From: Lepidodermella squamata | Taxonomy: Eukaryota > Animalia > Gastrotricha | Length of the DNA: 64,000 bases | Assembly (NCBI GenBank): GCA_047495785.1 | Contig: JBLDXI010000054.1 | Span: 434,001-498,000, forward strand | Direction of reading: 5' to 3' | Shown here: positions 3,166-29,691 of the stretch, one piece after another | Numbering within the stretch: the stretch's first letter is position 1 | Layout: each line of letters opens with the position of its first letter | Made by a program: the position numbers and the translations under genes | Notes under the pieces: model-generated | Told to the model about the DNA's origin: nothing | Database searches by the model: none | What the model saw: the letters and a program-made list of their open reading frames with translations, nothing else

Positions 3166-5359
3166 ATTGTGTCTTTGTGTGTATATTTGCCAGGATACAA
3201 ACGAAGATGTTTATGTTTTTATGTTTTATGCCCCTATTGATGTTAAGTTTTTCTGGGCTGTAATTTAGACGTATTTAAACGTATTGTCCTGCAGTTTTAG
3301 TGTTATAAATTGTTGAATTCGTTTGTGCGAAGCTGACAAATCAACAACTGGAAAGCTTAAAAAAGGTGAGATTGCGATACATCATACTTTGTAGAAGCGT
3401 ATCTGAATAGTTCGAACTGAAATGGCCGGCTGTAAAGCGCTTTTCTCCCAAAAACAGAAATCGGTTGTTACTGGTCGGAACTATCGAGAGAGGTCTTCGA
3501 ACTAGAGCTCAGCTTCTGACTTTTACCGTGCCGTAATTCCTTTGAAATAATCGGAAAGGATTTGATTCTTCGAAAGCTGCCTTTTTTGCGAATTCACCTT
3601 TTCCGGCGAGGTGAAAGTTGTCAACTGTCCCTGGTTTTGTTTCCCCGATTCAAATGCGAATTTCATTATATTGTTTGGTAACGATTTCTGTTTTGTAATA
3701 TCTAAAGGCATTGTTCATCTGAATTTTAAATTTTGTCTAACATAATGCCGCGAACTCCATTTCATGCCGATCAAGTCTCTCAATTGAAGAAGGTAACGCT
3801 GAGACTTTGCTTTTTTAACATTTCTTCTTATTGTATTAAGTGCCACTGATATTCAACACTTGCTCAGTGCTTGGAGTTGAGGCGAAATCGCAAGATTACC
3901 AAGGATATGGCTGCGTTTATAGCGAAAAACATCGGCACAACGGTTGTTAGAGTTCAAAACTGGTTTCACGCAAGAAGGAAAGGAGTTGAAGAGAAAACTA
4001 AGAAGAAGTTGCGAATCGAAGATATTCTCGGACAAGAAAATTTCAAATTGTTGATTTTGGAGGTGCAACATGATCCCAAGTTGGCAAAGGCGAGAAAGCA
4101 GCTGCTAGCCCGAAACTTTGGCCTTCCTGAGTGGCAAGTTAAAAGATTTTTCAGTATGCATCGCATCAAACAAAAGGCTGTTCGCACGATCATGACAAAA
4201 CAGCAGAAGGAAATATTCGAAAAAGTAAGCTTTGAAACGATGTAAAGTATATTTCATCTATCAGAAATTCTTGAACTATTAAGTTTGCTGTTTACTTTTT
4301 CCAATGTTTAACGCCAATATTTTCATGGGGAAATCTTGCTTGTCAAAAATTAATGCCTTGGTTGCTGCTAGAAGTTCTCAGTCGACAAAAAATATTCGGG
4401 CTATTTTCTGGTAGTGCTTCTCATATATTTAATCAATATTCTGGTTACTCTTTTATCAGGAATTCAGGAAGAATTGCAGCATGTCACAGCAGAGATTGAA
4501 CGAAATTGCCGAAGTTATGGGCATAACATCTCGTCAGGCCGGATGTCTTGTTGCTAAACAACGAACACGAGAGGGAATCCGTAGAATGGCGAAATCTGAA
4601 TCCATTCTATTCACGAATTCTCAACTGGCAGAACTAGAGGAAGCATTCCAGTCAACAGTGGCGATGGGCGATAGCTTTGACGATGTCCTCGTTCAAAGAT
4701 TGGCCATCAACACTGGATTGAAGAAAACCGTGATCAGAAATCGTTCGAGTTGCGACGTAAGAGACCTCGTTAGGCAGTACTTTCATGCGGTTTGTAATAA
4801 AATACTTGGTACTGGTATAAGCTACTGTTTATTCGTTAGTAATAGCATCATTATCGCGGCGCATCCGATACCGAGCGGTTGCAACGCCTACCAGAATGCG
4901 TACTGCGCACAAACGCTTCAGACAATTTCTCCGTTATCATGGCCAAATTCTTAAAATCAACCAAGTTTATCCTCTTCTTCCTTATTTCACCTTCGTTCAT
5001 TTCGAGCGTAGTCTAGGATAATACTTTTCTGTCTCTCTGTATCTATATTACTAAACGACGAAGGTCCTCAACGGCTAAATTTGAATTTTCCTTTGTATTC
5101 GGCGGCATGCTTAAATAGTATACTTCTACTCACTGGGTAGCCGAGTGCTTAGTGTCATTAGATAGAGAATAAAAAACTACTCGAGCGAAAAATGCCAGAT
5201 TTCGAATCCGTCAAATCCGCAGTGTCAAAAATGCCAAAAAACAAATAGAGCGCTTTCTGATTTTGAACGCAATTTAATTTAAAATACGAAAACATTTTTA
5301 AACTGTTAGTTAATTACTAAATCAAATTCTTATTAATTGAAATTTAAATATTTTCCATG

Positions 5360-6145
5360 GCGACGCGTTTGCGGGGAAATTCAAAAATTCCGGTCGCCGG
5401 GCGCCGCGTCGCCTGACCTTTGGGGTTCCATTATCTCAACCAAGGACACGTCCACGGGGTCGGGGCATGGCAAATTCGTGCTCAGCATGGTCGAATTGAT
5501 AATTACAGCATGAGAAAAGCAAATAAATCAAAAAAAAATTAATTATGTTGATCTCATGCATTGTCGTCACTATTCACAGGTACCATGATGGAAGACGCTC
5601 TAGATGTTACTCCTTGAGGGCGAATGGCGACTTTTAAAAGCTTTTACTACTGCTTTTCTATCTTAGATTTGTTGATTTCGTAGAAATAGATGGTTAATTA
5701 GTGTTTTCACATCTCATGAACGTCCTTTGCAAGATGTTGGATGTTCATGTTACGCATCCCTTTTAGGTTTAACCTCACTCATCTATTGCAAGATCTTCTG
5801 AGACTGGCTCAGGTCTGTAGAGCATCTACCAAGATCATTTTATTAATGAATCAACTATGCTGAGTAAGAAAAACAACAGTAAAACCTTCGGGGAGTAATC
5901 CATCACCTCAAGGACTGAACTAATTCGACTTAGCCATGTTACAAGTGTTCTTGCCTGTGCATGAATCAGATATGCTAACCCTTTCATATATTCACATTTC
6001 TATCTGGGCTTTCTAATCAAATCGACCATGTTGATGACGAATCTTAAGTGCGTTAACTTCAGGGACGTGTCTTTAGTTGAGATTTTAGAACCCATCAGTG
6101 TAGTCGACGCGGTTACCAGTGATCCGAAATTTGAGAAATTCCACG
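5360..6145. mobile_element. Degenerate foldback element (long imperfect inverted repeat)
   Basis: 5420-5500 (GGGTTCCATTATCTCAACCAAGGACACGTCC...CATGGTCGAATTGAT) mirrors 6016-6095. 5613-5660 mirrors 5868-5913. Confidence 0.65.
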
Positions 6146-6325
6146 GTGGGTATACATTGGGTTCTAATTCGCCTGTTATTTACTAGTTGTCTTGTTGAAC
6201 CATGAACCATGACCCATGACCATCACCACTTGTTGAAACATGACCAGAGTCTTCGAAAGGGCATACTTTGTTATTGAGTTTCTCATTCCCGGAGCAACAT
6301 TGCATGCAACCCACGAAAATGCATA

Positions 6326-6714
6326 CCGTATTTTGTGGATAAACGACGATTAGTGACGAAAAATCGCAACCTATCCAACTTAACCACTTACCCAGCAGGC
6401 GCTCATGTAAGCCACTTCATACAAGGCCCTGCCTATTAATACGGTTCTGCCCAGTGTGCGAAGTAGGACTTGGGACCTGAGGTGTTTTCTACCTGTTTTC
6501 TAGAACCCAGCCGAAGAAACCAAAGGGTCCCCCCTGTGGTTTTTTCAGCCTTTCTCTGGTTGGAGCCCTGGAGCTGGGGTGTCGCGACACCCCAGCACCC
6601 CTGTACTTCGCACCCTGGTTCTGCCCTTTATTATTTCAAATGACCATTACCCTCTGCCCTTTATTCCGGTTCTGCCCAATAATTGGGTCCTGCCTAATAA
6701 TTCGTAAAATACGG
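6326..6714. mobile_element. Tc1/mariner/pogo-type MITE (TA TSD)
   Basis: TA|CCGTATTTT...AAAATACGG|TA. Internal CTGCCC repeats are shared with the element at 53360-53773. Confidence 0.65.
6452..6617. mobile_element. hAT-type MITE nested in the previous MITE (8-bp TSD GTTCTGCC)
   Basis: CAGTGTGCGAAGTA...TACTTCGCACCCTG with GTTCTGCC on both sides. Related copies at ~21098-21260, ~61190-61283 and ~61790-61926. Confidence 0.85.
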
Positions 6715-7753
6715 TATTATGGAACTATGGACTAGATGAGCCAATTTTTCGACTATTCAGCCCCTAAATCCTGAAAATGCCAAGATAGCACTTATTACGC
6801 TATTATTCATAACCTATTTTGTGAATATCCTTCTCCATTATCTCGCAGATATTTCGTTATCCTTCTTAAATTCTATGACATGAAAAAGCGATCACATATT
6901 TTTCTGTTTCGATCACAGAATCAATCGCATTTCATGTTTTGTCAACTTTTTATGAGCCGTTGAGCCGTACGAGCTAAAGTGAACTACAACCTACAACCTT
7001 GTGCGAAGCACGTGAAATCACTGGAAGTAGATTCGCAGCCGCACAGGGTCTATAGTAGAATCGCACAATGTTTGCGTACTTGGTAGCATTCGAGAATTGC
7101 TAGGATGATTTGCATCCCTACATCCTAAGAAAGATAGCGAATGTTCTTGGTAATGTCATCTGGTTAGCGATTTAGCGATAATTGATGATTAGCAATTAAC
7201 AGCGATTCCGCCGTATTCGAGTAATGCTCGATTGGCTTGATTCCTATACGACAAATCCAGACCCACCATGCAAGTTTGGGTTTCACGATTTTTGCGCGGA
7301 CTTCGTAATGAAATACTACGTCTAGAGCAAAATGCCACGGACTAATTGTTATCAAAGAAAACAAAGAAAGTATATTTTACAAAGCGCATCCACTCGGTCA
7401 TTTTTGTTGGAATCCTATAATTAGGGCTATCAGGAATGCTGACGGCACTTCAAACCGATCTATTGGCGAGAATGTAGATTCTCCGGGGTTCAGAGTAAGT
7501 GAAGGCTAAAAAGTGGCGCGTACTTCACGATGAGAACGGGTTACGGGTAGATCTCTGGAGCAACTGGAGCGATTTGTTCTGCTTGGCAAGGATAAATCAA
7601 AGCGCAGCTTGTTAGAGACAAATCTGATCTGCTCTAGGTATTAAAATTTAACACTTAATGAGCTTAATTAGTCTCCAATAGACTAATTCTTCGTTTTGAA
7701 AGGGGAGAAAACAGCATTCAAAGCAGGATGCATCGCCATCACTACTCCGTAGT

Positions 7754-7939
7754 TGTTAGCGTCGTTGAATAACTCGGATTCGGGCTTGTTCACGTCAGTT
7801 ACAGATTACAGACAGTTGACGGGTGTCAAGTTTGCTTCCCCTCTTCATTTATAACGCTCCTATCACCTTTTACTTGTCACTATTCATCTTGTAACTGACG
7901 TGAACAAGCCCAGATCTGAGTTATTCAACGACGCTAACG
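7754..7939. mobile_element. Hairpin MITE, copy 1
   Basis: ~50-bp TIRs GTTAGCGTCGTTGAATAACTC.../...GAGTTATTCAACGACGCTAAC. Confidence 0.8.
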
Positions 7940-8273
7940 CTCCCGTTTCTGTGGCTTACGAAGTTAGTTATCGTTAGTTAGTTTGCTAGATACCCAATAG
8001 AGTATCGCCGTCCTCTATTCTTGAAAATTGTTACTTCACCTGTTTCGGTTTTAGGGGATACATTTTCAGAAAACTTTGAATACCGCTTGTTTTATGATTG
8101 CGACACTACAAAGATTATCCGCTACCTTCCAGCGGCGGGGTCTACTTTCAATAATATTACGTGTTCATAAATATCATTCTATAATTTTTCGCAGTAATCA
8201 GATGAACTTTCTATTTAGAATGGGTCATTTCTAAAATAGTTAGTAATGATTCATCAAAATCTTATCGCAATAT

Positions 8274-8458
8274 CGTTAGCGACGTTGAATAACTTTAATT
8301 TGGGCTTATTTAAATCTGTTTCAAGGTCACGGGTGACAAGTAAAAATGACATTTTTCAAAGTACAAAGAGGCAAAAACAAAATGCTTTTTACTTGTTACC
8401 TATCAATTTGAAATAGATGCAAACAAGCCTAAATCCGAGTTATTCAGCGTCGCTAACG
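8274..8458. mobile_element. Hairpin MITE, copy 2 (ATAT TSD)
   Basis: ATAT|CGTTAGCGACGTTGAATAAC...GTTATTCAGCGTCGCTAACG|ATAT. Confidence 0.8.
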
Positions 8459-9951
8459 ATATCTCTCAAAGCTATTAAAGTAGCAATAGTGCATCCTATT
8501 AGCTGCCGAATTGTTAAATTGAAAATGTTAAATTCTGCATTGTTGATAGGATTATTTTACTTCAACTTTTACGCGAAGTCGCCCCTTTATTTATAGCTGA
8601 TTGGATATTGATTGGGAATCAGAAATGGAAAATAGGCGAAATTCCGGCAAAAGGTCGCTACTAAACTATTGCTGAGTGCTGGCTATTTCGATACATTCAT
8701 AGCAATTTGAGATGCAACCGCTCCGCAGTTGTAAACAACCGCAATATAGCGGTATAATAATATATAGAAATATGCGCTAGCACTGGCGGTCCCTTACGTC
8801 GCAACACGAACGAAATTGGTTCCAGGACAGGCGCAAATCTGCTGGCCTAGTAAAGAAACAAAAAACTCTCGATCCAAGTAGTATTCGCGCTCTCAATGCC
8901 GTGGGTTCAATTCTTGATTAAAGGCTGCAGTGTTCCAAATATGTTGTAAACAGGAATTCGCTGTATCGAGCCGTTTGGAAGTAGAAAGAAGGCTAGAGAT
9001 AGTGGAAAAGTTTGGATTAAAACCCAGCCAGGTTCGTCACTTCTTCGTTAGAAAACGGAAACAATTAGGTATAGCGAAAAAGAAGCAATCCCGTCCTCGA
9101 ACACTGGTTAATTTCCAGAAAAAAACCTTGACTAAGGTGTGAAGAGGCTTATAATTCCAAACGGTGTAATTTTTTAATTTCTTCTTTTTGCACTCAGGAA
9201 TTCAATGAGAATCCAGATCTACTGGAAACTGGAATGAGTCGCCTTGCAGAAAGTCTGGAAATCCCTTTTAACATTGTGAAAGGTTTCTTCGAAAATCACC
9301 GCTCAAAAGCTCGAGGTCCTGCTAGACGTCGAGCAAGAAGAGCATTGACCTGGGAACAGCGGCTTCTTCTAGAAAAGGTGATTCCTGAAAAGTTTCAAGA
9401 TTCCAAGAATTGCTTTATATCATCATTGCGATTCCATTTATTTAGGAGTATAAAATCTCCGAATTCGTAACTCATGAGCAAGCTCAACGCCTAGCTTCTT
9501 CAATGGGGCATTCAATCGCGAAGGCAATTACTAATGCATTTTAATTATTAGTTATTTTTTCAATTCTTTTCATTTAATAGATAAAGAGGTGGTTCAATTC
9601 TAAACGGTTTTATGAAAAAACTAAGCAGAAGACAGTTGGTTCTTGAACATCTTGGTTTCTCCTGTTACAAACTACAGTTCATGGCGAATATTTACCTACC
9701 TTACGGAACGGTTACAAGCAATTTTATCGGGCTTGGAGGTTTCTCCATCCGTATCTGGTATTATTACAGTTTTGAATAGGGAATTCCCAGGCTAAATACC
9801 CAGAAATCGTGATGAATATCGTAATTGTACATTATAGAAATTGTAATGATCTTTTATCTCATCAATTGTGACCGATTTTTTCCGTAGGTAAAAAACATAA
9901 AACATAAAAATCTAAATCTAGGTGTAATCTAAATACTTCTAAATACGCGAT

Positions 9952-10176
9952 TTGAAAGACGTTTTTGCTAAAAGCGTAATGGAGAGTGGGAAATTCGATG
10001 AAGCTCGCTGTAGAAGCATAGCTGGCAAGGTCGGATTGAAATTGACAGCGGTGAAGATGAAGCGCTGGTTCGCCCAGAAACGGAAATTGGTTGGCATCGG
10101 TGCGAGGCGAATTTTTCAGAGTGATCTTTTAACTAGAGCTCAGCTTCATACGAAGGACCGCGCCAAAATTCCTTGA
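9952..10176 (+). pseudogene. Isolated, divergent HD4-like homeobox fragment
   Basis: LKDVFAKSVMESGKFDEARCRSIAGKVGLKLTAVKMKRWFAQKRK aligns to HD4 (LQEAFQSTV..GDSFD.ALY..LA.KTGLK..V..WF...RK). Confidence 0.65.
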
Positions 10177-10574: not shown

Positions 10575-12211
10575 CACTTGAGAAGCCGGTCAGGTCTCTT
10601 ACTCGATGTAGATTATAAATATATTTTTTTAGCGTTCTTTATATTGTTAATTGCAATTTTTCAAACTCTTGCTCATCAGTGCTTCGATTTATTGCGGAGG
10701 CGTAATCTAAGCGCAACTAACAAAAAGGATATTGCTGCGTCATAGCGAGATTGGCCTATCCGTTTTAAAGTTGAAAACTGGGTTCACGCAAGGAAGAGAA
10801 AAAGTGTTGCGAAGATGATCAAGAATAGTCGGCGATTTCAAGATATTATTGGGGTCGAGAAATGCGAACTGTTGAAATTGGAAGTGAAACTTAATTCCAA
10901 GTTGCTCAAGGCGAGAAAGCAGCTGCTGGCACGAAAATTTGGACTTACCGAGCGTCAGGTTGAAAGATTCTTCAGCAAACATAGCACTCAACGAACGGCT
11001 CGCTTCAAGCTAACATCTCAGCAGAATGAAACATTCGAGAAGGTATAATCAAGATGCGATATTTGATTAATATTAGGAGTGATCGTTATAGGAATTCAAG
11101 CAGAATCCTTCCACTTCGTTGCAAAGACTCAACGAGGTGGCAGAAGCCTTGGGCATAACATTTTACCAGGCCACGCATCTTTTCAAAAAACGGCGAGCTC
11201 AATTGGGAATTCACGGTATAGCTGGGACATCTAAATCCGTTGGAATCACGGATTCTCAACTTGCCGAACTGCAGGAAGCATTCCAATCCACGTTGGTTAG
11301 GGGCGGAAGCTTTGACGATGCTCTCTATCAAGGTTTGGCCGAGAAAACCGGATTGAAAAGAACCGCGGTCATGAAGTGGTTCTTAGCCCAGCGCAAATCT
11401 GCTGGCCTCGTAAGGAAATACGAAACTCTCACTCGAAGTAGTATCAGCTTTCTGAATGCCGTGAGTTCAACTCTTGATCATAGTTTACAGTTTACAATGT
11501 ATATAAAATTGTGTGCCTCAGGAATTCGCTGTTTCGAGCCGAATAGAAGACGGCAGAGCGCTAGCAATTGCAGACAAGTTGGGATTAAATTTCAGAAAGG
11601 TCACATCTTTTTTCTATATGAAGCGGAGACACTTGAGAACTGTTAATAATGAGCAATCTCGTCTTGGCACACTGAAGCATGATCAACGAAATGCCTTGAC
11701 TAAGGTGTGATAGTGCTCATAATTCCTAACATTGACGTTTTGTGCTTTGTTATTTTGTTTTCAGGAGTTTCCTGAGAATGAAGATCCACAGAAAAATCGC
11801 ATGACTAGTCTAGCTGACAGAATGGAATCACCTTCTGATATTGTGAAACCTTTCTTCGAAATCCAAAATGGTAAAAAACGAGCTCCTGCTAGACGTCGAG
11901 GAAAAATCTTCTTTACCTTGGAGCAGCGTCTTCTCCTAGAAAAGGTGATTAACTCGATAAATTTCAAGATTCCATGATCGCTTTTATTCATCTTTCAATT
12001 TTCCAGGAGTATGAAATCTCTAAATTCGTAACACATGAGCAAGCTGAACGCCTAGCTACATCTATGGGATTATCGACCGAGAGGGCAATAAAGCTTTCAC
12101 TTTGTTTCCGAGTTCCTCATAAATTACTTCAATTTTTAGATACGCGGATGGTTCAGGTCGAAACGGTTTTATGAACAAGAGCAACATAAAAAACATAAGG
12201 AAGGATCATGA
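10575..12211 (+). pseudogene. Seven-homeodomain gene copy 2 (degenerate exon 1, frameshifted HD1)
   Basis: The exon 1 relic lacks an ATG and a GT donor. Exon 2 hits TAG at ~10742. Exons for HD2-HD7 are recognisable, with the GC donor after GAGAGG and last exon 12140-12211. Confidence 0.8.
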
Positions 12212-13985: not shown

Positions 13986-15248
13986 ATGTTGCCAACCCAG
14001 CTGAAAGCCGATCAGCGCTCTTACTTGTTGAAGGTAACGCCATGAATAATGCTTCAAAATTATACTATTATTTACTAATTTCAAATCTTACTCAGTGCTT
14101 CGATTTGATGCGAAATCGTATTCTTACTAAAGATATAGCTGAGCTCATAGCGAAAAAGATTGGCACATCGGTTGTGAAAGTGCGAAACTGGTTTCACAAA
14201 AGAAGAACAAAAAAAGACGTTGATGGGAAAGCTATGAAGATCTTGCGATTGAAAGATATTCTCGGGGAAGAAAACAACGAATTGTTGATGCTCGAAGTGA
14301 AAAATGATCCTAAACTGAGCAAGGGCAGACAGCAGATGCTGTCACGACGATTCGGCTTGACTGAGAGCCAGGTTGAACGATTCTTCCGCAAGCATCGAAG
14401 CCAACGAAGGGCACGTGTTCAATTGAAGTTGACATCCCATCTAATTGAAGAATTCGAGAAGGTTAAAACGAGGAGCGCTATTTGTTTTATCTGGTGGTGG
14501 ATTTTTTTTACAGAAATTCAAGCAGAATCCTGGCGCTTCAAAGAAAAGGTGCCGCGAAATGGCTGAATCCTTGGGCATAACAGTTAATCAGGCCACACGC
14601 CTTGTCTTAAAGCGACGAGCCCAAGTGGGATTACGTGGTAGAAAAGCAAAATCTGAATCAATTAGATTTACGAATTTTCAGCTGGCGGAACTACAGAAAG
14701 CATTCCATTCAACAATGGCAAGGGGCGACAGATTTGACGATGCACTTTATGGAAGTTTGGCTGAACAAACCGGATTGAGAAGGTATTGGGTCAGGAATTG
14801 GTTTGTTACCAAGCGCAAATCTGTTGGCCTCGGAAAGCGATTAGCTCTTGATCAAAACACTGCCTGCGTTTTAAATGCTGTGAGTTCACCCTTGGTGGAA
14901 GGTTGAAATATTCCAGATGTATTATTCTTCAGGATGGCCGAGCGCAACTGACCTTGGAACAGCGACTTGTCCTGGAGAAGGTGGTTTTATTAGTTTGAAG
15001 AGTTGGAGATATTTATTCGCTCCATTATGCTAATAATTTAGGAGTATGCAACCTCAAAATTCGTAAAGCACTTGCAAGCTGAACGTCTAGCTGCCTCAAT
15101 CGGATATCCCACCGAGAAGGCAATAACGTTTACACTTTATTTCCGAGTTCTTTCTTTATTCCTTTCATTTTTGTAGATAAAGAAGTGGTTCAGGTTGAAA
15201 AGAGAGAATGAAAAAAAGAAACAGAAGGAAGAAGCATTAGGTTTGTGA
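13986..15248 (+). CDS. Multi-homeodomain gene copy 3, in-frame 5-HD variant (~325 aa)
   Basis: Exons 13986-14033, 14096-14461, 14514-14879, 14933-14980, 15042-15119 (GC donor), 15177-15248. The frame is open; the HD5 body and HD6 are deleted. Confidence 0.75.
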
Positions 15249-15659
15249 ACATCATGGTTTCTCCTGTAATATTTCGAAGCTAAGATCGAATTTCACAACT
15301 GCTGCTTTCACAACTTTGACATGACATCAGTTTTGAACAGCGCAGCTAAGCGACATTCATTTTCAGTAGAGCAAAACGATCGGGAATCTTGAGTTGATAT
15401 ACTTGGAATAAATATACTGTTATTAATTGATATTGAAATTTGAAATGACTATAACACAAGTATTTTATTTCCTTGGTAGGTGTAATCCTTTGAAGTATGA
15501 TGAATTCTGAATTCGTATCAAACGAGATTAGTAACAATTTCATACGAGCAGTTCTATTGCTTATAAAAGGTAATATTTCCGATATAATATCGAAATAGAA
15601 TCCTAACGTAGGTTGACAGTTGACATGTCAATTCAGCAGATCCAAAATTGGGCGTCCTC

Positions 15660-16238: not shown

Positions 16239-17873
16239 ATGTCGCCAACCCAGTTTTATGCCGATCAGGTCTCTTACCTTATAAAGGTAGCGCTTTATTA
16301 AACTTACTTGTTATTAGTGTTTTTTTTACAATTTTATTTGCTCAGTGCTTCGATTCGATGCGAAATCGCGTTCTTACTAAGGAAATCGCCGAGTTGATAG
16401 CAAACGAGATTGGCACATCGGCTGTTAAAGTTAAAAAGTGGTTTCACACAAGGAAGGGAAAACGTGTTGATAACATGAGCAGGAAGTTTCGGCGATACCA
16501 AAATATTATAGGGGAGGAGAAATACGAACTGTTGAAATCGGAAGTGAAACATGATCCAAAGTTGACCAAGGCGAGAAAGGGACTGCTGGTACGACGATTC
16601 GGCCTCACCGAGCGTCAAGTTGAAATGTTCTTTTACAAGCATCGTATTCAACGACAGCAACCTTTTTGCTTAACACCCCAGCAGAAAGAAATGTTCGGGA
16701 AGGTATAACTGAGAACTGATAATTGCTTTCCTATAATGTTCCCGTAATGAACTGATAATGTTCGCTATAGGAATTCAAGAAAAATCCTGTCGCGTCTCAG
16801 CAAAGATGCGGTGAAGTGGCTGAAGCCGTGGGAATAACATTCAACCAGGCCAAGCGGCTAATCGTTAAACGACGAGCTGAAGTGGGGTTGCACGGTAGAA
16901 TGGCGAAATCTGAATCCATTCGATTCACAGAATTTCAACTGGCAGCACTGCAGGAAGCATTCCAGTCCACGGTGTCAAGGGGCGACAGCTTCGACCTTGC
17001 CCTTTATCAAAGTTTGGCCAAGAAAACCGGATTGAAGAAGGCCGTGGTCAATAATTGGTTCTTAACCCGGCGCAAATCTGCTGGCCTGGTAAATAAACGA
17101 GTACGTCTCGAACCAAGTTCTATCCGCGCTCTTGATGCAGTGAGTGCAACTCTTGATCAAAAGTTGCCATGTTCCTAATATTTGTGCCTCAGGAATTTGC
17201 TTTATCTAGCGGAATGTTTCGCAACAGAATGCAAACAATTGCGGAAAATTTGGGATTAACTGTCAGACAGGTTGAACACTTTTTCGTAATGAAACGGAGG
17301 CAATTGAGAACTGCGAAAAAAGAGCAATCTTGTCTTCGCACGCTCAACAATTTTCAACGAAAAGCCTTAAATAAGGTGCGATGAGGCATTGAATTTAAAT
17401 CGATGTCGGTGTACGTATTGTTATTTTTGCAATCAGGAATTCAATGAGAATCCAGATCTCCTGGAAACTGGACTAACTCGTCTTGCTGAAAGGCTGGAAA
17501 TCTCGTTTAATACTGTGAAAAGTTTCTTCGAAATCCGCCGTTCAAAAGTCAGAGGGCATTCTAGAAGCCGAACGACCTGGGAACAGCGGTTTCTTCTTGA
17601 AAAGGTTATTGTTCGAGTGTGAAGATTGAATGGATTGCTTTGCTTTATCATTGTGCTTCAATTTATTCAGGAGTATGAAATCTCCAAATTTGTAACACTC
17701 AAGCAAGCTGAACGCCTAGCTACATCATTGAGATTATCGACCGAGAGGGCAATACAGCTTACACTTTTTCCGAGTTCCCCGAATATTTCTTCAATTTATA
17801 GGTACGGGGCTGGTTCAATTCGAAACGATTTTCTGAAAAAAAGAAAGAGAAGAAGCGGGAGACGATTGGATAA
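16239..17873 (+). CDS. Seven-homeodomain protein, copy 4 (intact, ~424 aa)
   Basis: Exons 16239-16286, 16346-16702, 16771-17139, 17193-17375, 17437-17604, 17671-17748 (GC donor), 17802-17873. All introns are phase 0. Seven helix1 (Q..L.K.F) / helix3 (WF/FF..RR) units. Confidence 0.85.
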
Positions 17874-18013: not shown

Positions 18014-19688
18014 ATGTCGCCAACCCAATTTAATGCCGATCAAGTATCTCACTTGATGGAGGTAACGCGAAGGCTACGTTTATTGAACAGTTCTTCGTAT
18101 TGTAAATGAATGTTTGTGCTTACTCAGTGCTTCGAGTTGATGCGAAAGCACAACCTTACCAAGTATATGGCTGAGGTTATAGCGAGAAATATCGGCACAA
18201 CGGTTGTTCGAGTTCAAAATTGGTTTCACAGAAGAGGAAGGAAAGGAGTTGAAGAGAAAACCAAGAAGGTATGGCGATATGAATTTATTCTCGGGAACGA
18301 AAAGAGCAAATTGTTGATGTCGGAAGTGAAGCGTAATCCCAAGTTGTTCAAGGCGAGGAAGCAGCTGTTGGCGCGAGAATTCGGTCTCACCGAGCGCCAA
18401 GTTGAAAGATTCTTCCGCAAGCATCGTATCCAACAGAGCACATGCGTTCGCCCGAAAGTGACACAGCTGCAGAAGGAAATATTCCAGAAAGTATGTTGTA
18501 AGGCGATATGAGACCCTCCGCCATAAATACATAAACGAAAATCTTTATCCCGGATACTTTTTTACTGCTACCATTTTTTTGCCATTAGGAATTCATACAG
18601 AATACCAGCGCGTCGCAGCATAGATTTCGCGAAATTGCTGAGATTGCAGGCATAACATTCTGTCAGGCCAGACGTCTTGTCGTTCAAAGACGGGCAGAAG
18701 TGGGACTCCGACGCAGAAGGGCGAAATCTGAACCCCTTGAATTCACCAAGTCCCAACTAGCAGAACTGCAGGAAGCATTCCAGTCAACAATGGTGAGGGG
18801 CGATAGCATTGACGATGCCCTATATGAAAGTTTGGTTGGGAAAACTGGATTGAAAAAAACTGCGATCAAGAATTGGTTCTCCGACCAGCGCAAATCAGGT
18901 GGCCTCGCGAGGAAACAAAAAATGCTCGATACAAGTATTATCTGCGCTCTAAATGCTGTGAGTTTTTGCTAAAACGTTTCAATGATCCAAATAAGCTTTT
19001 CCTCAGGAATTCGCTGTATCGAGCCGAATGGAAGACGGCAGAGTGCAAGCAATTGCGGACAAGTTGGGATTAACTTTTGGACAGGTTACACATTTTCTCG
19101 CTATCAAGCGAAGGCAATTGAGGACTGCAAGAAATGAGCAATCCCGGTGCAGCGGACTGGAGCGTGACCAACGTAATGCGTTGACTAAGGTGTGATTAGT
19201 CTCTTAATGCCAATCGATAACTTTTTCTATGTTCAGCAATTCGATGAGAATCCAGATCTACAGGAAAGTGGAATAACTCGTCTGGCTGAACGATTGGAGA
19301 GCCCTCTTAATATTGTGAAACGTTTCTCCCAAACGCACCGTGCGGAAGCTAGAGGTCCTGGTGTATGTCGAGTTACCTGGGAGCAGCGGCTTCTTCTAGA
19401 AAAGGTAAACAAAAATTAACAAGTTTGATTTTTGAAGGGTGAAGGCGTTACTTTGTTTCATAATTTTGATTCAATTTTTTCAGGAATATGAAATCTCCAA
19501 ATTCGTAACACGCGATCAAGCTGAACGACTAGCAACGTCAATCGGATATCCGGCCGAGAAGGCAAAATAAACCCTACACTGTTATTTTCCTTAGAAAATG
19601 TTTTGATCATTTTTAGATACAGCGGTGGTTCAGTTGGAAACGTTATTCGAAAAAAGGAAACCGGAGAAAGAATCAATCGGTTTCATAA
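18014..19688 (+). CDS. Seven-homeodomain protein, copy 5 (intact, ~426 aa)
   Basis: Exons 18014-18061, 18128-18490, 18589-18957, 19007-19189, 19237-19404, 19484-19561 (GC donor), 19617-19688. No stop codons. Confidence 0.85.
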
Positions 19689-19918
19689 TATCTCATCTCA
19701 CGTCGAATGACGCAAAATCAACTTAAATGAATGATATTGAATTTTAAATTTAGCGATTCTCTCGACCCTGTCTAATATGACATCAGTGAAATGCCTGATA
19801 TGAAATAACTGTTCATAATTTGATGTCTTTATCAGAACGGGGAGGAAATTTTTATTTTGTTGCTGTTGAAACTAATTTCACTGCTTGGAAATTCCCAGGC
19901 TGTCGTTACTCGAGCATC

Positions 19919-20430
19919 ATGTTAGACCCAAAAAAGCAACTTTCACAAAATCAATCGTCCTATTTGCTAAAGGTTACAACTGACCAATTCCTTAATCGTT
20001 GTTAGTGATACTAATTTTGTGTCTACAAGAGCTTCGAAGTGATGCGCGATCGTATTCTCACTAGCGGTATTGCAAATCGCATAGCGAAGAAGATTGGCAT
20101 ATCGGTTTTTCAAGTTGGAAATTGGTTTTACAGAAGAAGAAAACATGAAAGGCATTGGCGCCCACCTCGATTGGAAATGATTAGCCAGTGGCAATGGCGT
20201 AGAATCATCAGGGTAGCTGAATCATGATTCGCATTCCTGAGAATTTGTCTGTAACCCTTATCCAGGAGGTCGATAATCACTACGTCCTTCCTCGGCATGT
20301 AATAACTAAGCTGATGGCCGAAACTGGACTGCATGCGATTCAAATCGGCCGCTGAGACGAGCTTCCACAAAATACCGCGCATTAATGATGGCGAAGAACG
20401 GATATCAAACGCCTTGCAAAAAGGTATTAC
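19919..20430 (+). pseudogene. B-type homeobox gene (HD1 plus a distinct second HD), stop inserted in helix 3
   Basis: MLDPKKQLSQNQSSYLLK|SFEVMRDR...VGNWFYRRRK...WRRIIR|EVDNHYVLPRHVITKLMAETGLHAIQ, then a foreign patch carrying TGA at 20353-20355. Paralog at 30412. Confidence 0.7.
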
Positions 20431-21488: not shown

Positions 21489-23795
21489 TCAATTCGTTGG
21501 CCGATTACGTTTGAGCACCGGGTGGAGCAGTAAAACCGATTCCATTATGGAGAATAATAGCGTCGTTAAGCTGATAGCTGATCGCTGATTGGCAGGATTT
21601 TCGGATAACAGTATGGCAATCAAAGCGCCAGCCGGTAACACAGTGGCACCGGTGATGGCCGCGATGCAAGACGCCGAAAACTCGGGGCAATTCTCAGATG
21701 CACCTCGAATATGTTTCAGTTGAAACACAGCCATCAGCGTGTAAATGAGCAGCAGCATTTGAATGGCCCCGATCGATCCCAACAGGGCTAAGCTAACACC
21801 CGACATTTCACATTCAACGAACCAAGTTTCTACTAAAGTGTCTGCATTTTCATCGTAAATGAGCCGCTGATTTGACTGTTCAACGCACTTTGAGTTGTAG
21901 CGCGTAATCAACCATGTGATAATCAGGGCTAAGCTAGGGCAAGCTGAAACAGGCCCGTAAATCACGGTTTTGTTGTCCAAAGTTCTGAACGTCGCAGGCG
22001 GGAATCGAACTAGTTTTTGTGATCGATTCTTCGGCGAGCCGTACACGCTGAGCGGGAAATGTGGGCTTGCGACGGCGATTCGCGATTTCCACAGGCCTTT
22101 TCTCATGTTCGTTCTAACAAATGCATTCACCAGCGACATCCTAGCTGTAATCAGGCTGCAAACTACACTCAAGCCGAGGCCCATAAGGAAAAACGAGGCG
22201 TTTTCGACTGCTGCGCTTCCGGCACTTAACTTCGTCACGGAAAGGGCTGAAGCTGCGTTTAAGCATAACAGGCCCATTAAGCCCAACGTTTTTGACCGTC
22301 CATAATTCCAGGTAACACATTTCTTGAAAGAAATCGCCGCTATACCAGCTAGCTGGAAAAAGGATGAGAAGATCACAAGGGCTACTACAATCGAAAAAAC
22401 TACAGTTGAAATTCGGAGAATTATTTTCCGAAAAACTGGTTGATCTAGCGGAAGTTTTATCGAGTTCGTGCCATATACCCTTTCTAGCGAGTAACTTCTC
22501 AGATCGAATTCTTCAAGAGATTTGTTCAGACTTTGCTTGACAAGGTATAGTATCTGCATACCAGCTGCCTGGCTCCACTGAGTCTCAACCTGAACATCCC
22601 CTAGAAATTGGCCAGTTTTGCTGTAAGAAGTTCTGCCAACTCTGATTCCATTCGGCTCACTGGCCAGAATAACTTCTTTGGCAATGGAAACCACGATTTC
22701 AGGGCGACTGTGATAGTCTCTGAGTGAGAGATTGAATTCAGCTTTCAGCCTGCGATCAGTCTCATTCAGAGCTAAAATGGCGCTTGTAAAGACATCGTGA
22801 ATGTGGAACGAAGTCAAGAATTGATCTACAGTGAAGTTTGTTGCTCTACCTATGAAAGTCTCAAACTGATCAGCTGTATCGCCAAGGTCTGAGATTCTGT
22901 CGCGAACCGTCGGTATTTGCGCATTTCCAAAGTAGAAAGTTTGCCTAGCTTGTTCTTTCAGGATTTCCGAACTGCAGCCAGGTGGAGGTAATAGCGAGAA
23001 AGCGTTTGAAACTGCTAGGAAAACAAATCTAGGCCCAGTTATCCCAGCCTTGTAAGCCTCACAAAGAAAGCGCGGGACAACTAGTGTGCTGAAGCTTGTG
23101 ATAACTAGAATCCTTAAGCCCGATCGCTTCAGACTCGCAATCACCTCCGACGCTTCGTCATCGATAGTGTTGAAAAGTGGAACTTCAACCCCGGCTGCTA
23201 CTGCTTGGTCGTTGAAAAACAGCCCGGTCAGCATGTCGTTGCTGTACAAGGTTGTCGCGAGTGTGGCGACCTTTTTCCATCCACCGACCTGCTTTATGAA
23301 AGTCAAAATCGCCATTGCAGTTGTTCTTGCTGTAGCCATTGTAAGGAACAAATTAGGGTACAGCTTTTTGTCGGTCAGCAGCTGAGCGACGCAAAAGCTC
23401 GGCAAAGAAACTGACTGAATGTGGCTTAGAAAAGTCCCGACGGCCTTGCAGCCCGTTGAAGTTGCCGGTCCTATGATGATTGGGGATTGCAGCCCGATCG
23501 AAGGGTCTTCTCTGCGGAAGCCAATCAAGCGCGAAGCTGCTTGTATTCCCATCATCTCATCCATTAGCTGGAACTCGATGAAATAGTCACTCAGCACATC
23601 GCTTTTTGAGTTCATTTTGTCTGCTACATAATGCATGGTTGCCACCCCGGCTTGACTTTGTTTTGGGTCGATCAATTCTATCGGGGACAGGAGTGCCACC
23701 CGCAGCTTTTGTGCCCTGTAGCCAGCCTCCATGCTTGACCGAATCGCAGAAATATACATTAGAAGCGTTATAATGATGAAGCTGTTTGAAACCAT
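21489..23795 (-). CDS. Intronless class C GPCR (GABA-B-like Venus flytrap domain + 7TM), ~768 aa
   Basis: Signal peptide MVSNSFIIITLL. VFT motifs IIGP.TS, L.DKKLYPNLF, GGWKKVATL and GITGPRFVF. Hydrophobic 7TM C-terminus. Inserted antisense within the homeobox array. Confidence 0.85.
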   Translation of the reverse strand: MVSNSFIIITLLMYISAIRSSMEAGYRAQKLRVALLSPIELIDPKQSQAGVATMHYVADKMNSKSDVLSDYFIEFQLMDEMMGIQAASRLIGFRREDPSIGLQSPIIIGPATSTGCKAVGTFLSHIQSVSLPSFCVAQLLTDKKLYPNLFLTMATARTTAMAILTFIKQVGGWKKVATLATTLYSNDMLTGLFFNDQAVAAGVEVPLFNTIDDEASEVIASLKRSGLRILVITSFSTLVVPRFLCEAYKAGITGPRFVFLAVSNAFSLLPPPGCSSEILKEQARQTFYFGNAQIPTVRDRISDLGDTADQFETFIGRATNFTVDQFLTSFHIHDVFTSAILALNETDRRLKAEFNLSLRDYHSRPEIVVSIAKEVILASEPNGIRVGRTSYSKTGQFLGDVQVETQWSQAAGMQILYLVKQSLNKSLEEFDLRSYSLERVYGTNSIKLPLDQPVFRKIILRISTVVFSIVVALVIFSSFFQLAGIAAISFKKCVTWNYGRSKTLGLMGLLCLNAASALSVTKLSAGSAAVENASFFLMGLGLSVVCSLITARMSLVNAFVRTNMRKGLWKSRIAVASPHFPLSVYGSPKNRSQKLVRFPPATFRTLDNKTVIYGPVSACPSLALIITWLITRYNSKCVEQSNQRLIYDENADTLVETWFVECEMSGVSLALLGSIGAIQMLLLIYTLMAVFQLKHIRGASENCPEFSASCIAAITGATVLPAGALIAILLSENPANQRSAISLTTLLFSIMESVLLLHPVLKRNRPTN

Positions 23796-24389
23796 GTTTT
23801 GTCGATATTGAAATGAACTGAGGGCAAACTGAAATCTGCGGATTCCATGGATATCCGCATGAATGCAGTCATGCTTGGTTTTATATTTCAAAATCGATAC
23901 ACCCCCGAAAAATGTTATCAGGACTTGATCGATAAGAGACGGGCTCGGACTCGTGCGTCACGTTAATCGGGACAAAAAATAGTCGTAAACATTGAGGTTG
24001 ATTCATCAATGCAGCATCCGCCCATTAAAGCGGAAAAATGACATTTGGTACAGTATCATCCCGAAAAACTATGACCGCTGATATGAAGTCATTTGTGAGT
24101 ATTTTAGGGCGAAAAAATCCCACATGGAAGTTTTACAGTGCTACTAATCATTGATGGTTGATAGTCATTTTCAAAATGTTCAAACGCAGCTGATTATCGT
24201 AGCCATTATGCGAACATAATATTAGATCAATTTGTAGATCACTGATAAAACAATTTTATGATATTTATTTATTTATTTATTTAGAAGCTATTACACCCAA
24301 AGAGGGAAGCTTGATACTTCTTATCAAATGTAGTCTAAATCAATATGGAATAAATTTGGAACAGGAGGCGCGTGCTAACAAGATGGAGC

Positions 24390-25488: not shown

Positions 25489-26625
25489 ATGTCGAAGCAG
25501 ACCCAACTTGATGCCGATCAGGTCTCTTACTTGATGAAGGTAACGCCAGGGCTTCGCTTTTTTTACAGTTCTTTTAATGTTAACTACTATTTTTCTCAGT
25601 GCCTCGAGTTGCTGCGAAAACGCAAGCTTACCAAGGATATGGCTGAGTTCATAGCGACAAAGATTGGCACAACGGTTGTTAAAGTTCGAAACTGGTTCCA
25701 AACGAAAAGACGAAGAGGAGTCGAGGTGAGAACTAAGATTTGGCGTTTCAGAGATATACTAGGGAAAGAGAAAAACGAGCTTTTAATGCTGGAAGTGAAA
25801 CATGATCCGCAGCTGTTCAAAAGCAGGCAGCAGAGGCTGGCGCAACGATTCGGCTTGACGGAAAGCCAGGTTGAAGTATTCTTCCGCAAGTATCGCGCCA
25901 AACGAAGGGCTCATGTTCGCCTGAGGTTAACGCCCCAGCAAAATGAGAAATTTGAAAAGGTTACTCGGCCAGCAGGCTTCCTCGGGGTCCTCTGCCCACC
26001 TTCGGTGTGTGATCGTTCCGTGTCTCTTCCGTCTTTCTACATCTTGTACGTCTTGTCTTGTATAATCCTGGTTCCTCTTCTCCTTTCTTTTCTTTTTCTT
26101 CCTGTTGCACTCCTTCTGTTCTGATTAACCCATTACATGTAATCTTCTGCATACGATAAATATTCCTTTAGCTCGCCCACTAGCGTCCTCAGCGCACTGC
26201 CGCCGGCAAGCGCTTGTCGTCTCGCAACCGCGTGCCATCTCTGTCACTTTGTATATATTGTTCGCAAGGAAGGAATTTATTATTTTATATTGTTCTTTTA
26301 TATTTTTGTGACTGATGGACAAATAAATTTGAATTTAGAATTTAGAATTTAGAATTTAACGAAGTTGCTGAAGCTTTGGGCATCACATTTAGTCAGGCCA
26401 CACGTCTTGTCTTAAAACGACGAGCTCAAGAGGGAATATGCGGTAGAAGAGTCAGATCTGAACCCATGAAAATCTCGAATCCTCAAGAAGCAGACCTTCA
26501 GGAAGCATTCCTGTCCACAGCGGTGGTTGGCGGCAGCTTTGACGATGCCCTCTATGAAGGTTTGGCCAAGAAAACTGGATTGAAAAAGTACGTGGTCAGG
26601 AATTGGTTCTCAACCCGGCGCCAAC
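25489..26625 (+). pseudogene. Seven-homeodomain gene copy 6, disrupted and truncated by LINE sequence
   Basis: Exons 1-2 are intact. Intron 2 and the start of exon 3 are replaced by a LINE 3' end (25965-26358). The gene ends after HD4 WFSTRRQ. Confidence 0.8.
25965..26358 (+). mobile_element. LINE 3' end with (GAATTTA)n tail
   Basis: GCCAGCAGGCTTCCTCGGGGTCC as at 52710, pyrimidine UTR, then AATAAATTTGAATTTAGAATTTAGAATTTAGAATTT. Confidence 0.85.
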
Positions 26626-27520
26626 TTGACCGGCACCACGTGCGGGCCCATGACGCTCCCTGACGGCAGTTTCCTCCACCCTTCCGTGGCTCTGGCCGAT
26701 CAGCTACTCACCCACTTTATCGCCCCGATGTATCCCTGCTGTGATCCGGCCACCGATGTGGCAACGCGTCAGCGGTGGTTCGAGCTGGAACATGCGATGG
26801 CCAACGACCCGGCCTTGCATCCCGTCGGTGCGATTCGGCTTCCTGGGCCTCAGAACTTCAACGTCAGCCAGCGAATGCTAGCGCGCGAGATCGATCGACT
26901 GCAGCCTTTCAAGGCACCTGGACTCGATGTCATCAGCAATGTCTACTACAAGTGGGGCGATGTTCCCCTGCAGATACACCTCAGGCGGCGGTACAACCTC
27001 CAAGAGTGAGGTTTTCGCATTCTCCTGTCGTCCCCCCGGTGCGAGGCTCGTGCTTGGAGGCGCCGTCATCCCGCAAGTCTCTGTAATGCGAATTCTGGGC
27101 ATTCTGTTCGATGACACGTTGACCTGGAACAAGTTGACATTGTGTTTGAGGTTGTAAGTTGAAAAAAATCCGCACGCTGATTGGTCAGTTGGCTTGTATC
27201 CATGACTCCGCCTTGCTACTTGATCGTGCGATCCATAAAATGTTTGCAAAAAATACTTCTTTTATGAATGGTTTTACGCATTTGTTGGAAACGCGTGCTA
27301 CGATACGGCCTTCATAAAAATAATAAAAGCGAATATTTATATGGATCGCACGATAAAGTAGCAAGGCGGAGTCATGGATACAAGCCAACTGACCAATCAG
27401 CGTGCGGATTTTTTTCAACTTACAACCTCAAACACAATGGACAAGTTGACCTGCCCCATATCGACCACGTGCTCAATCGCTGCCTGGACAGGCGCCTTGT
27501 CGTGCTGTGCCTGCGCCTTT
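26625..27520 (+). mobile_element. Internally deleted LINE ORF2 fragments
   Basis: LQPFKAPGLD (RT domain 0) and IPQVSVMRILGILFDDTLTW (RT thumb). Confidence 0.8.
27138..27439. mobile_element. MITE with ~100-bp TIRs inserted in the LINE fragment (~9-10-bp TSD ACAAGTTGA)
   Basis: CATTGTGTTTGAGGTTGTAAGTTG... / ...CAACTTACAACCTCAAACACAATG. Confidence 0.85.
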
Positions 27521-27699: not shown

Positions 27700-29691
27700 A
27701 TGTCTCAAACCTTTCTTGAAACCGGTCAGATCTGTTACTTGATGAAGGTATCGACCGGAACAGTTCTTTATATTGATAACAACTATTTTCCAACCTTTTC
27801 TCAGTGCTTCGAGGTGATGCGAAATCGTAATCTTACTAAGCAGATCGCTGAGTGTATTGCGGAAAAGATCGGCACATCGATTACTAAAGTTCGAAATTGG
27901 TTTCATACCAGAAGGAAGAAAAGAGTTGATGATAGGGCCCAGGTGATCTGGCGTTACAGAACTATTCTAGGGAAAGAAAACTACGATTTGTTGCTGCTGG
28001 AAGTGAAACGTGATCCTAAACTCTCCGAGGGAAGACTGCAGATGCTGGCACAGCGATTCGGCCTGACGGAGGGCCAGGTACAGAGATTCTTCTGCAAGCA
28101 TCGCAGCCAACGAAATACATATCTTCGTGCGTTGACATCCCAGCAAAATGAGAAATTCGAGAAGGTGAAACTGAGACGCAATATTTGCCTAATCTTGTTA
28201 TTGAATTTTACAGGAATTCGAACAGAATCCCGGCACTTCGCAGCAGAGATCCCGCGAGATTGCTGAAGCTCTTGGCATAACATTTAGTCAGGCTAAACGT
28301 CTTGTCGCTAAACGGCGAGCGCAAGAGGGAATCCGCGGTAGAACAGTGAAAGAGAATAGATTCACGAATTCTCAACTGGCTGAACTAGAAGAAGCATTCC
28401 AGTCAACGGCGGTGATGGGCAATAGATTTGACCTTGCTCTTTATGGAGGTGTGGCCAAGAAAACTGGCTTGAAAGGAACCGAGGTCAGGCAATGGTTCCA
28501 TATCCGGCGCAAATCTGCTGGCATCGGAAGGAAAAATATCGCTCAAGGTAGTATCCGCGCTCTGAATGCTGTGAGTTCAACCGTTGGTCAAACGTTGCTA
28601 TGATTAAAATATGTTTTGCCTTAGGAATTCACCTTATCTAGTCGAATGGAAGGCCGCAGAGCGCAGGCCATCGCGGAAACGTTGGGATTAACTTCCAGAC
28701 AAGTTATATGCTTTTTCAGAACCAAGCGGAAACAATTACCGTACTGCCCGGAACAAAAACCATGACATTTATTTTTTTCAAACATTGATGAACCCCTGAC
28801 ATTTAAAAGGGACTGACATTTATTTCGGGCCTGACATTTATTTATCCGAACCAACCAGTAATTGACTAGATAACCAAAATGGCATACATTTCCCTGAGAT
28901 TCTACATATTTTGACCCAAAATTTGGTCCCTGACCTTTCTAAGTGCCAATGGTAGAAATTATATCAAATCAAAAAGGCTAAAACTACCTTATTAGTGATC
29001 TTCAGTATTGTCCCCGCCACTGACCTGACATTTATTTCGGGCCTGACATTTATTTTTACGAACGACCTCTAACCTCTGACAATTATTTGAGGCTGCCATT
29101 TATTCGAGGCTGGCATTATTTTCGGGCAGTACGGTAAGAACGAAAAATGAGCGATGTCTTCCTCGCAGACTCAAACATGAGCAACAAAATGCCCTAACTA
29201 AGTTGTGATGAGGCTGTTTTAACATCCATGAATTTGTTTTATTGCGATCAGGAATTCAATGAGAATCCAGAATTGAATGAAACTGAATTTACTTGCCTAG
29301 CTGAACGACTGGAAGTCCCTTTCGATGTTGCGAAACGTTTCTTTCAAAAACTGAGAGCTGAAGCCAGAGGACGACTCAAAACCGTACTGACAAGGGAACA
29401 GCGGCGGTTTCTAGAAAAAGTGATTGACTCGAAAAACTTCAGAGGATTGCTTTGTTATATCGTTGTGATTCAATTGATTCAGGAGTATGAAATGTCCAGA
29501 TTCGTAACACGTGAGCAAGCTGAACGCCTAGGACTTTCAATGGGATATCCGCCCGAGAAGGCAATAAAGCTTATACTTTCTTTCTGACGTTCCTTTTTAA
29601 TATTTCGTCCCCTTTTCAGGTGCAGAGATGGTTCAGGTGGAGAAGGGTAAATGAAAAAAGGGATCTGAAAAAAGAAGTGGTCATTTCATGA
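27700..29691 (+). pseudogene. Seven-homeodomain gene copy 7, exon 4 interrupted by a MITE
   Basis: All 7 exons are recognisable. MITE at 28739-29134. The exon 4 donor reads AAG|TTGTGA versus AAG|GTGTGA in paralogs. GC donor retained. Confidence 0.8.
28739..29134. mobile_element. Tc1/mariner/pogo-type MITE (TA TSD)
   Basis: TA|CCGTACTGCCCG...CGGGCAGTACGG|TA with internal TGACATTTATTT repeats. Removal restores KRKQLRT. Confidence 0.85.

Follow-up and report, generated by a model that had tools for sequence, protein, structure and literature searches.

The window analysed here, a stretch of 64,000 nucleotides from the gastrotrich Lepidodermella squamata, carries a tandem array of genes predicted to encode tightly packed, divergent homeodomains (HDs). 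In the focal gene, the A-type copy g4 (positions 16239-17873, plus strand), the predicted protein is made up of seven such HDs, and five of its introns interrupt an HD at one and the same place, between positions 18 and 19, in phase 0. This architecture is real, and it marks the route by which a large, hitherto undescribed superfamily of multi-HD genes was assembled. Taken together, the evidence makes it probable that the family is lineage-specific, that it was built by duplicating an intron-bearing HD unit, that it has evolved by birth and death, and that its cassette design is a by-product of this history.

Several elements of the pattern were already known, namely packed divergent multi-HD proteins (CEH-100), an intron within each homeobox (DUXA) and isoforms with one or two HDs (DUXC), and the exon architecture alone is the expected outcome of tandem duplication of an intron-containing repeat. 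The 18/19 phase-0 intron provides a clean marker that links several large multi-HD families in one poorly studied phylum and shows the construction of these families from one intron-bearing unit. The pattern is like that of fast-evolving zinc-finger arrays, in which the scaffold is conserved, the contact residues vary and units can be gained or lost without a change of frame, and the multi-HD family may be a second, independent case of modular DNA-reader diversification.

Exon architecture of the focal gene and its copies

The gene model, obtained by translating candidate exons, comprises seven exons and six introns (Table 1). The product computed from it has 424 amino acids, a mass of 49.8 kDa and a pI of 10.5, with 91 lysine and arginine residues against 45 aspartate and glutamate residues. 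Because every exon length is a multiple of three, all six introns are in phase 0. Introns 1-5, which have GT-AG borders and lengths of 59, 68, 53, 61 and 66 nt, fall at the 18/19 site of HD1, HD3, HD5, HD6 and HD7, with the junction residues LIK/CF, FGK/EF, LDA/EF, LNK/EF and LEK/EY, respectively (a slash marks the junction). The site in HD1 is 18/19 only if a two-residue insertion in the loop between helices 1 and 2 is accepted; counting back from W48 gives 16/17. In the Pfam PF00046 alignment, where profile position n is HD position n+1, residues 2-39 of exon 4 correspond to profile positions 19-56 and residues 1-39 of exon 5 to positions 18-56, and by this register both exons start at HD position 19. 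HD2 (residues 50-103 of exon 2) and HD4 (residues 51-101 of exon 3) are uninterrupted, each lying inside a single exon. When the units are anchored on W48/F49, the distances from one W48 to the next along the protein are 63, 54, 66, 57, 61 and 56 residues. Splicing out intron 6 restores the W48-F49...R53 recognition helix (V-R-G-W-F-N-S-K-R), and read-through of this intron leads to an unrelated tail.

An earlier note on this DNA had placed introns 1-5 in phase 0 at the 18/19 site of these five HDs, had described HD2 and HD4 as free of introns, and had reported the second HD of the B-type genes as cut at the same site. All of this agrees with the model: exon lengths and the PF00046 register give the site (in HD1 with the loop insertion), HD2 and HD4 lie whole within exons 2 and 3, and the B-type junction reads E/EV or R/EV in the copy g8 and in the 5' fragment. 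Two of its other statements need amendment. Its rule that each internal exon encodes residues 19-60 of one HD and residues 1-18 of the next describes exons 4 and 5 and the B-type exon 2a, but exons 2 and 3 each contain an extra complete HD; and its list of introns was right as far as intron 5, but overlooked the sixth.

Table 1. Predicted exons of the focal gene (g4), other copies in the window and parts of these copies.
Feature	Position	Strand	Description
Focal exon 1	16239-16286	+	ATG and N-terminal part of HD1, 16 codons, ending LIK/gt; ATG and donor conserved in paralogues
Focal exon 2	16346-16702	+	119 codons: C-terminal part of HD1, whole intron-less HD2, N-terminal part of HD3
Focal exon 3	16771-17139	+	123 codons: C-terminal part of HD3, whole intron-less HD4, N-terminal part of HD5
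Focal exon 4	17193-17375	+	61 codons, pure shifted cassette: HD5 19-60 and HD6 1-18
Focal exon 5	17437-17604	+	56 codons, pure shifted cassette: HD6 19-60 and HD7 1-18
Focal exon 6	17671-17748	+	26 codons: HD7 19-44
Focal intron 6	17749-17801	+	53 nt, GC-AG, phase 0, at HD7 44/45
Focal exon 7	17802-17873	+	HD7 45-60, basic tail, TAA stop
g1	3745-9649	+	exon 3 split by a 4.07-kb element at 4741-8813
g2	10680-12208	+	pseudogene: stop in exon 2, exon 1 decayed; exon borders retained
g3	13986-15248	+	open, 325 codons; without exon 4 and most of exon 5
g3 mini-exon	14933-14980	+	48 nt, remnant of the deletion, flanked by cag/ and /gt; predicted usable splice sites
g5	18014-19688	+	intact A-type, 426 codons, same seven exons
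B-type 5' fragment	19917-20352	+	exon 1, exon 2a (20030-20212), truncated exon 2b (from 20266)
g6	25492-26687	+	broken: exon 3 disrupted, exons 1-2 intact
g7	27700-29688	+	A-type, exon 4 disrupted
g8	30412-32479	+	B-type; extra HD between HD1 and HD2; exon 4 frameshifted; intron 6 donor GT
g8 exon 2a	30526-30708	+	C-terminal part of HD1 and N-terminal part of the extra HD; phase 0-0
g8 exon 2b	30754-30903	+	C-terminal part of the extra HD; phase 0-0
g8 exon 2c	30951-31310	+	HD2 and N-terminal part of HD3; phase 0-0

The splicing of the focal gene and of the other copies is predicted from comparison between copies. The window holds eight full or broken copies and one fragment, all on the plus strand between 3.7 and 32.5 kb, and in a search of the assembly (121.2 Mb, 151 contigs) exon 3 was found at least 36 times, on the contigs C54, C23 and C24. 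In about 30 modelled copies, ag and gt borders flank the exons at homologous codons and the junction residues are conserved, in paralogues that share only 50-65% protein identity; most introns contain in-frame stops or have a length that is not a multiple of three, while the exons are open. How likely is it that the introns share a site by coincidence? An HD offers 180 codon-and-phase slots, so that four further coincidences would have a p of about 1e-9 by simple arithmetic, and from this value and the retention of the borders in about 30 paralogues it follows that the common 18/19 site is not due to chance. Of 20 distinct copies, 17 have a GC donor at intron 6 (AG/GCAATA or GCAAAA) and the other three, all of them B-type, have GT (GTATGG); a non-canonical GC donor has thus been retained through many gene duplications. 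Comparison of the copies revealed no special conserved elements in the introns besides the splice sites.

The B-type set consists of g8, the copies L017 and L024 and the truncated fragment at about 19.9-20.35 kb. Relative to A-type genes, its members have two additional phase 0-0 exons and one more HD, eight in total. This extra HD is nearest to HD2, at only 26% identity, and the exon 3 tree, which is unresolved and lacks an outgroup, does not decide between its gain and its loss. At the start of exon 2c of g8 (30951-31070), part of HD2 forms a short internal repeat, MLEVKQNPKLVKARK and then LILEVTRNPKLFKQRK. A search of the long introns for hidden cassettes yielded no more than parts of neighbouring gene copies and the g3 mini-exon. 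An isolated HD-like ORF at 9943-10173 (plus strand), which includes the motif RWFAQKRK, lies between g1 and g2 and is more divergent than the genes of the array. In the copy L027 (C23:1454391-1457759, minus strand), a second block of exons 5-6-7 directly follows the first and stems either from a partial duplication, in tandem, of the gene's 3' end or from a neighbouring copy that is truncated. The element that splits exon 3 of g1 has terminal inverted repeats of 26 nt that are 92% complementary and no long ORF; the 99%-identical counterpart on contig C23 lacks it, which marks it as a recent DNA-transposon insertion.

Homeodomain identity and known multi-homeodomain systems

Family scans, database searches and fold prediction were run exon by exon, and joined sequences were used for alignments, trees and dN/dS. 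Exons 2 and 3 score 34.0 bits (HD2) and 32.8 bits (HD4) with PF00046, above the gathering cut-off of 22.9 bits, and for exons 4 and 5, each with two-thirds of an HD, the scores are 21.2 and 21.9 bits. A Pfam scan with E-values up to 1 detected neither a zinc finger nor any other domain family in any exon. The AlphaFold2 model of exon 3, made with 20 paralogue sequences, has the three helices of HD4 at residues 54-70, 76-86 and 90-103 with pLDDT of about 90, preceded by helices 2-3 of HD3. The top Foldseek matches of this model are all homeodomains (the DUX4 double HD, tandem Engrailed and Aristaless), and the Aristaless and Engrailed HDs superimpose with an rmsd of 1.1-1.5 Å (1.2 Å for Aristaless) and target TM-scores of 0.77-0.9. 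Helix 1-2 loop insertions occur in HD1 (two residues) and HD4 (four residues) and in no other HD; the TALE superclass, with its three-residue extension of this loop, can be ruled out.

The core residues L16, F20, W48, F49 and R53 are present, apart from HD3, which has L-I at positions 48-49. Among paralogues, positions 16, 20, 48, 49 and 53 have entropies of 0.12-0.47 bits against a mean of 1.07, and positions 34-35 and 45 are likewise almost fixed. The most variable positions are 47, 50 and 51, at 1.8-2.1 bits against the same mean; these are the positions that normally contact DNA bases. In DNA-binding HDs, position 51 is almost always Asn, which contacts bases; this Asn51 is absent from all seven focal HDs, which have T, K, K, T, M, I and S there (HD1-7), and among paralogues N at position 51 is often found only in HD4 (10 of 23 copies). 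Since every focal HD lacks Asn51, DNA binding is not assured. From the distribution of fixed and variable positions, the family would appear to consist of fast-diversifying, putative nucleic-acid-binding proteins.

A HMMER search with exon 3 against 1.84 billion representative proteins found no close relatives. It gave 13 hits, the best with E = 1.6e-8, at 27-39% identity, and all of them are multi-HD proteins from unrelated sources (Caenorhabditis nigoni, Peromyscus and metagenome contigs); the C. nigoni protein (E = 8e-6, 30% identity) is the only Caenorhabditis match. Among the closest systems by published description are CEH-100 and CEH-99 of C. elegans, which have 12 and four HDs, respectively (Hench et al., 2015, PMC4448998; PMC4901127). 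They are lineage-specific, have no orthologues in close relatives, lie in duplication-rich regions and have some HDs about 55 residues apart (PMC4448998). Like the present proteins, they combine many divergent HDs with little or no linker; however, they are single genes, whereas the present family forms arrays of tens of copies.

Double-HD genes of mammals share a different feature. DUXA has one intron within each homeobox (PMC2211742), so that a middle exon of a DUX gene links the last part of one HD to the first part of the following one, and the DUX double HD is said to derive from a duplication within an intron-containing single-HD gene, with some members in tandem arrays (PMC13558733). 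With DUXA, DUXB and DUXC the present genes share only the principle of one intron per homeobox. Although the DUX4 double HD is the best Foldseek match to exon 3, identity in the structural alignment is 24-27%, and membership of the DUX family is ruled out by seven or eight HDs in an invertebrate genome, as against two PRD-like HDs found in mammals only. ZF-class proteins, Zhx and Homez also have several HDs in one protein (PMC7144352; PMC2211742). They carry C2H2 zinc fingers and long linkers, and they were ruled out because no zinc-finger family was detected in any exon. Homeobox intron positions named in the literature include 44/45 and 46/47 (PMC2211742); in a non-systematic survey of homeobox literature, we found no mention of an 18/19 position.

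Constraint, decay and possible recombination in the array

Are these genes still maintained, or is the exon pattern a fossil in decaying, non-functional DNA, with the focal gene merely not yet broken? We regard the latter as unlikely. Decay would fit the state of the array, in that stops, frameshifts or interruptions affect five of the window's eight full-length copies, as well as many that lie elsewhere. It would also fit a dN/dS of 0.8-1.0 in recent pairs, and no protein of this family was found in public collections, including assemblies of sequencing runs. In older paralogue pairs, however, dN/dS is 0.37-0.51 at dS values of 0.17-0.72 over 300-420 codons, which indicates protein-level constraint on the exons. 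Splice sites have been retained across a dS of about 0.7, the structural core is nearly invariant while the contact residues vary, and several copies (g4, g5, L002, L011, L013 and L019) are fully open; all of this argues against simple decay.

Different parts of the gene give conflicting trees. Protein trees of exons 2-3 and of exons 4-7 each reject the topology of the other (AU p = 0.0009 and 0.004), and a compromise protein tree is not rejected (AU p of about 0.12). In nucleotide AU tests, the overall tree fails on the 3' part when the breakpoint is set at 465, 738 or 921 (p = 0.006, 0.007 and 0.03, respectively), and the 3' tree fails on the 5' part (p of about 1e-5). The partner of the focal gene changes with the exon: it is g2 in exon 2 (95%), none in exon 3 and L013 in exons 4-5 (92%), and g2 itself pairs with L011/L019 in exon 3 (94%). 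The earlier note had proposed to compare exon-wise trees for signs of shuffling. The trees do conflict, yet the conflict is not arranged by exon: in a two-tree breakpoint scan by AICc, two trees are better than a single tree everywhere, there is no peak at exon borders, and the best breakpoints lie inside exons 2 and 3. A sliding window of identity likewise places a switch of partner inside exon 2. Gene conversion among tandem paralogues would produce a mosaic ancestry of this kind, which does not point to exon-wise shuffling.

These results bear on a more far-reaching idea, according to which the cassettes are used combinatorially, so that regulated exon skipping or exchange of exons between copies yields many HD numbers and hybrid HDs. 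The design would permit this. Exons 2-5, and in B-type genes also 2a and 2b, are phase 0-0 and have their borders at one and the same codon of the HD, and simple arithmetic agrees with the earlier note that, whichever of exons 2-5 is removed or added, the frame is kept and helix 1 of one HD joins helices 2-3 of another to rebuild a whole HD. The number of HDs differs between subfamilies, the partners of the focal gene differ by exon, in AU tests the tree from one half of the gene fails on the other (p from 1e-5 to 0.03), and there is a precedent in dog DUXC, for which single-HD and double-HD isoforms have been described (PMC13558733). The breakpoints, on the other hand, lie inside exons 2 and 3 and not at their borders, the similarity switch within exon 2 is what ordinary gene conversion would leave, and the introns carry no conserved elements beyond their splice sites.

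The one clear deletion, that in g3, removes 303 nt, or 101 codons in frame. It begins 2 nt inside exon 4 and stops 46 nt short of the exon 5 donor, leaving the mini-exon, and it is also present on contig C23 in L007 (the counterpart of g3) and in L009. Its ends thus lie inside exons; the loss is in frame, but recombination between introns did not cause it. Copy-number variation in exon units, as foreseen by the earlier note, is accordingly found in part: HD number has changed in frame, in the B-type genes and in g3, but the g3 deletion ends inside exons 4 and 5 and not in introns. Combinatorial use of the cassettes is therefore decidedly unlikely in our judgement. Still less probable is the stronger version, in which splicing, or somatic or germline exchange among tens of copies, would generate a large repertoire of HD numbers, orders and hybrids. 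Combinatorial splicing is speculation, and a combinatorial mechanism an unsupported extrapolation. If the stronger version were true, the family would be the homeodomain counterpart of cassette-based diversity systems, in proteins whose base-reading residues are already the most variable.

Origin of the exon register and genomic setting

How did the exon borders come to be shifted against the domains? The same HD position is 57-70% identical between copies, whereas the seven positions compared with each other are 15-32% identical, which indicates that the internal duplications long predate the spread of the gene and that their order is no longer readable. Consistent with this, alignment of the HD N-terminal and C-terminal parts in register revealed no pairing of exon 2 with exon 3 or of exon 4 with exon 5. 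The suggestion of the earlier note that the protein arose by tandem exon duplication is thus upheld in one respect, as the shared phase-0 intron fits a duplicated intron-bearing HD unit, and limited in another, as 15-32% identity hides which exons were duplicated. A different, eight-HD family at C54:621-638 kb, 123-140 kb downstream on the same contig, shares the K/E[FY] phase-0 intron, which is present in part of its HDs and absent from others; examples are EILEK/gt..(51 nt)..ag/EYAFN and LLNK/gt..(56 nt)..ag/EFEAN.

The preferred reading, duplication of an intron-bearing unit, can be outlined as follows. In a founder HD, a phase-0 intron would have separated positions 18 and 19, and repeated internal duplication of this unit would have produced an exon register shifted by 18 codons against the domains. 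In HD2 and HD4 the intron would have been lost, or was never present; as these two HDs lack it, the founder-intron account needs an extra event. The finished multi-HD gene would later have been copied many times and have undergone birth-and-death evolution; most copies are broken, and moderate purifying selection acts on the intact ones. The phase 0-0 design would then be a historical by-product, through which gain or loss of a whole unit is frame-neutral, and such changes have happened in evolution. The exon borders with their phases, the HD fold, the structure of the copies, the selection and the conflict between trees are established by the analysis; the order of the duplication events and the loss of introns are steps that we infer, as are nucleic-acid binding and the splicing itself.

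Repeat proteins encoded by symmetric-phase exons, with an intron inside the repeat, have exons of the length of a repeat, a register shifted against it and frame-neutral gain and loss of units. The present genes share all three features, namely the exon-unit length, the shifted register and the frame-neutral gain and loss. For homeodomains at such a scale, no description of symmetric-phase exon repeats was found in the literature searched.

That each HD instead gained its intron independently at a favoured proto-splice site (AAG/GAAT), as the fit of the AAG/GAATT junction to the MAG/R motif in nearly every unit and the intron-less HD2 and HD4 might suggest, is highly improbable, because introns would have had to arise in parallel at least five or six times in this family, always at one codon boundary and in one phase, and further times in the eight-HD family, because HD4 carries CAG/GAA at the same site with no intron, and because inheritance by duplication is far more parsimonious.

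The published L. squamata genome, from one amplified animal, has 122 Mb in 157 contigs with 43% GC; its authors analysed only the Hox genes, and the multi-HD arrays are unmentioned (PMC11660948). The G+C content of the window is about 42-43%, and a search for COX1 showed that the present assembly contains no mitochondrial contig. The interval C54:411900-449349 is collinear with the end of contig C23 (C23:1352089-1479936) at 95-99.4% identity, and within the collinear region C23 has extra sequence of 13.8 kb, with four more gene copies, and of 11.3 kb, so that the two contigs differ in copy number at the level of genes. Beyond this, C23 ends in an inverted duplication whose paired genes are identical (L002=L003 and L015=L016). 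The relationship between C23 and C54 in this region is that of haplotypes, of a recent segmental duplication or of an artefact of the amplified single-animal library. Collinearity stops at position 15349 of the window, just upstream of the focal gene, and for this reason the focal gene has no near-identical partner on C23.

Other genes and elements share the window with the array. Fragments of retroelements are found at 0.1-3 kb and at 50.6-55.3 kb. On the minus strand, an 822-aa single-exon ORF with an ANF-receptor domain (21492-23957) has one public match, at 31% identity, and a series of Cys-loop channel genes, in which an N-terminal module is repeated, extends over 34605-63062. A NACHT-ankyrin ORF is also found on the minus strand, at 37835-39685.
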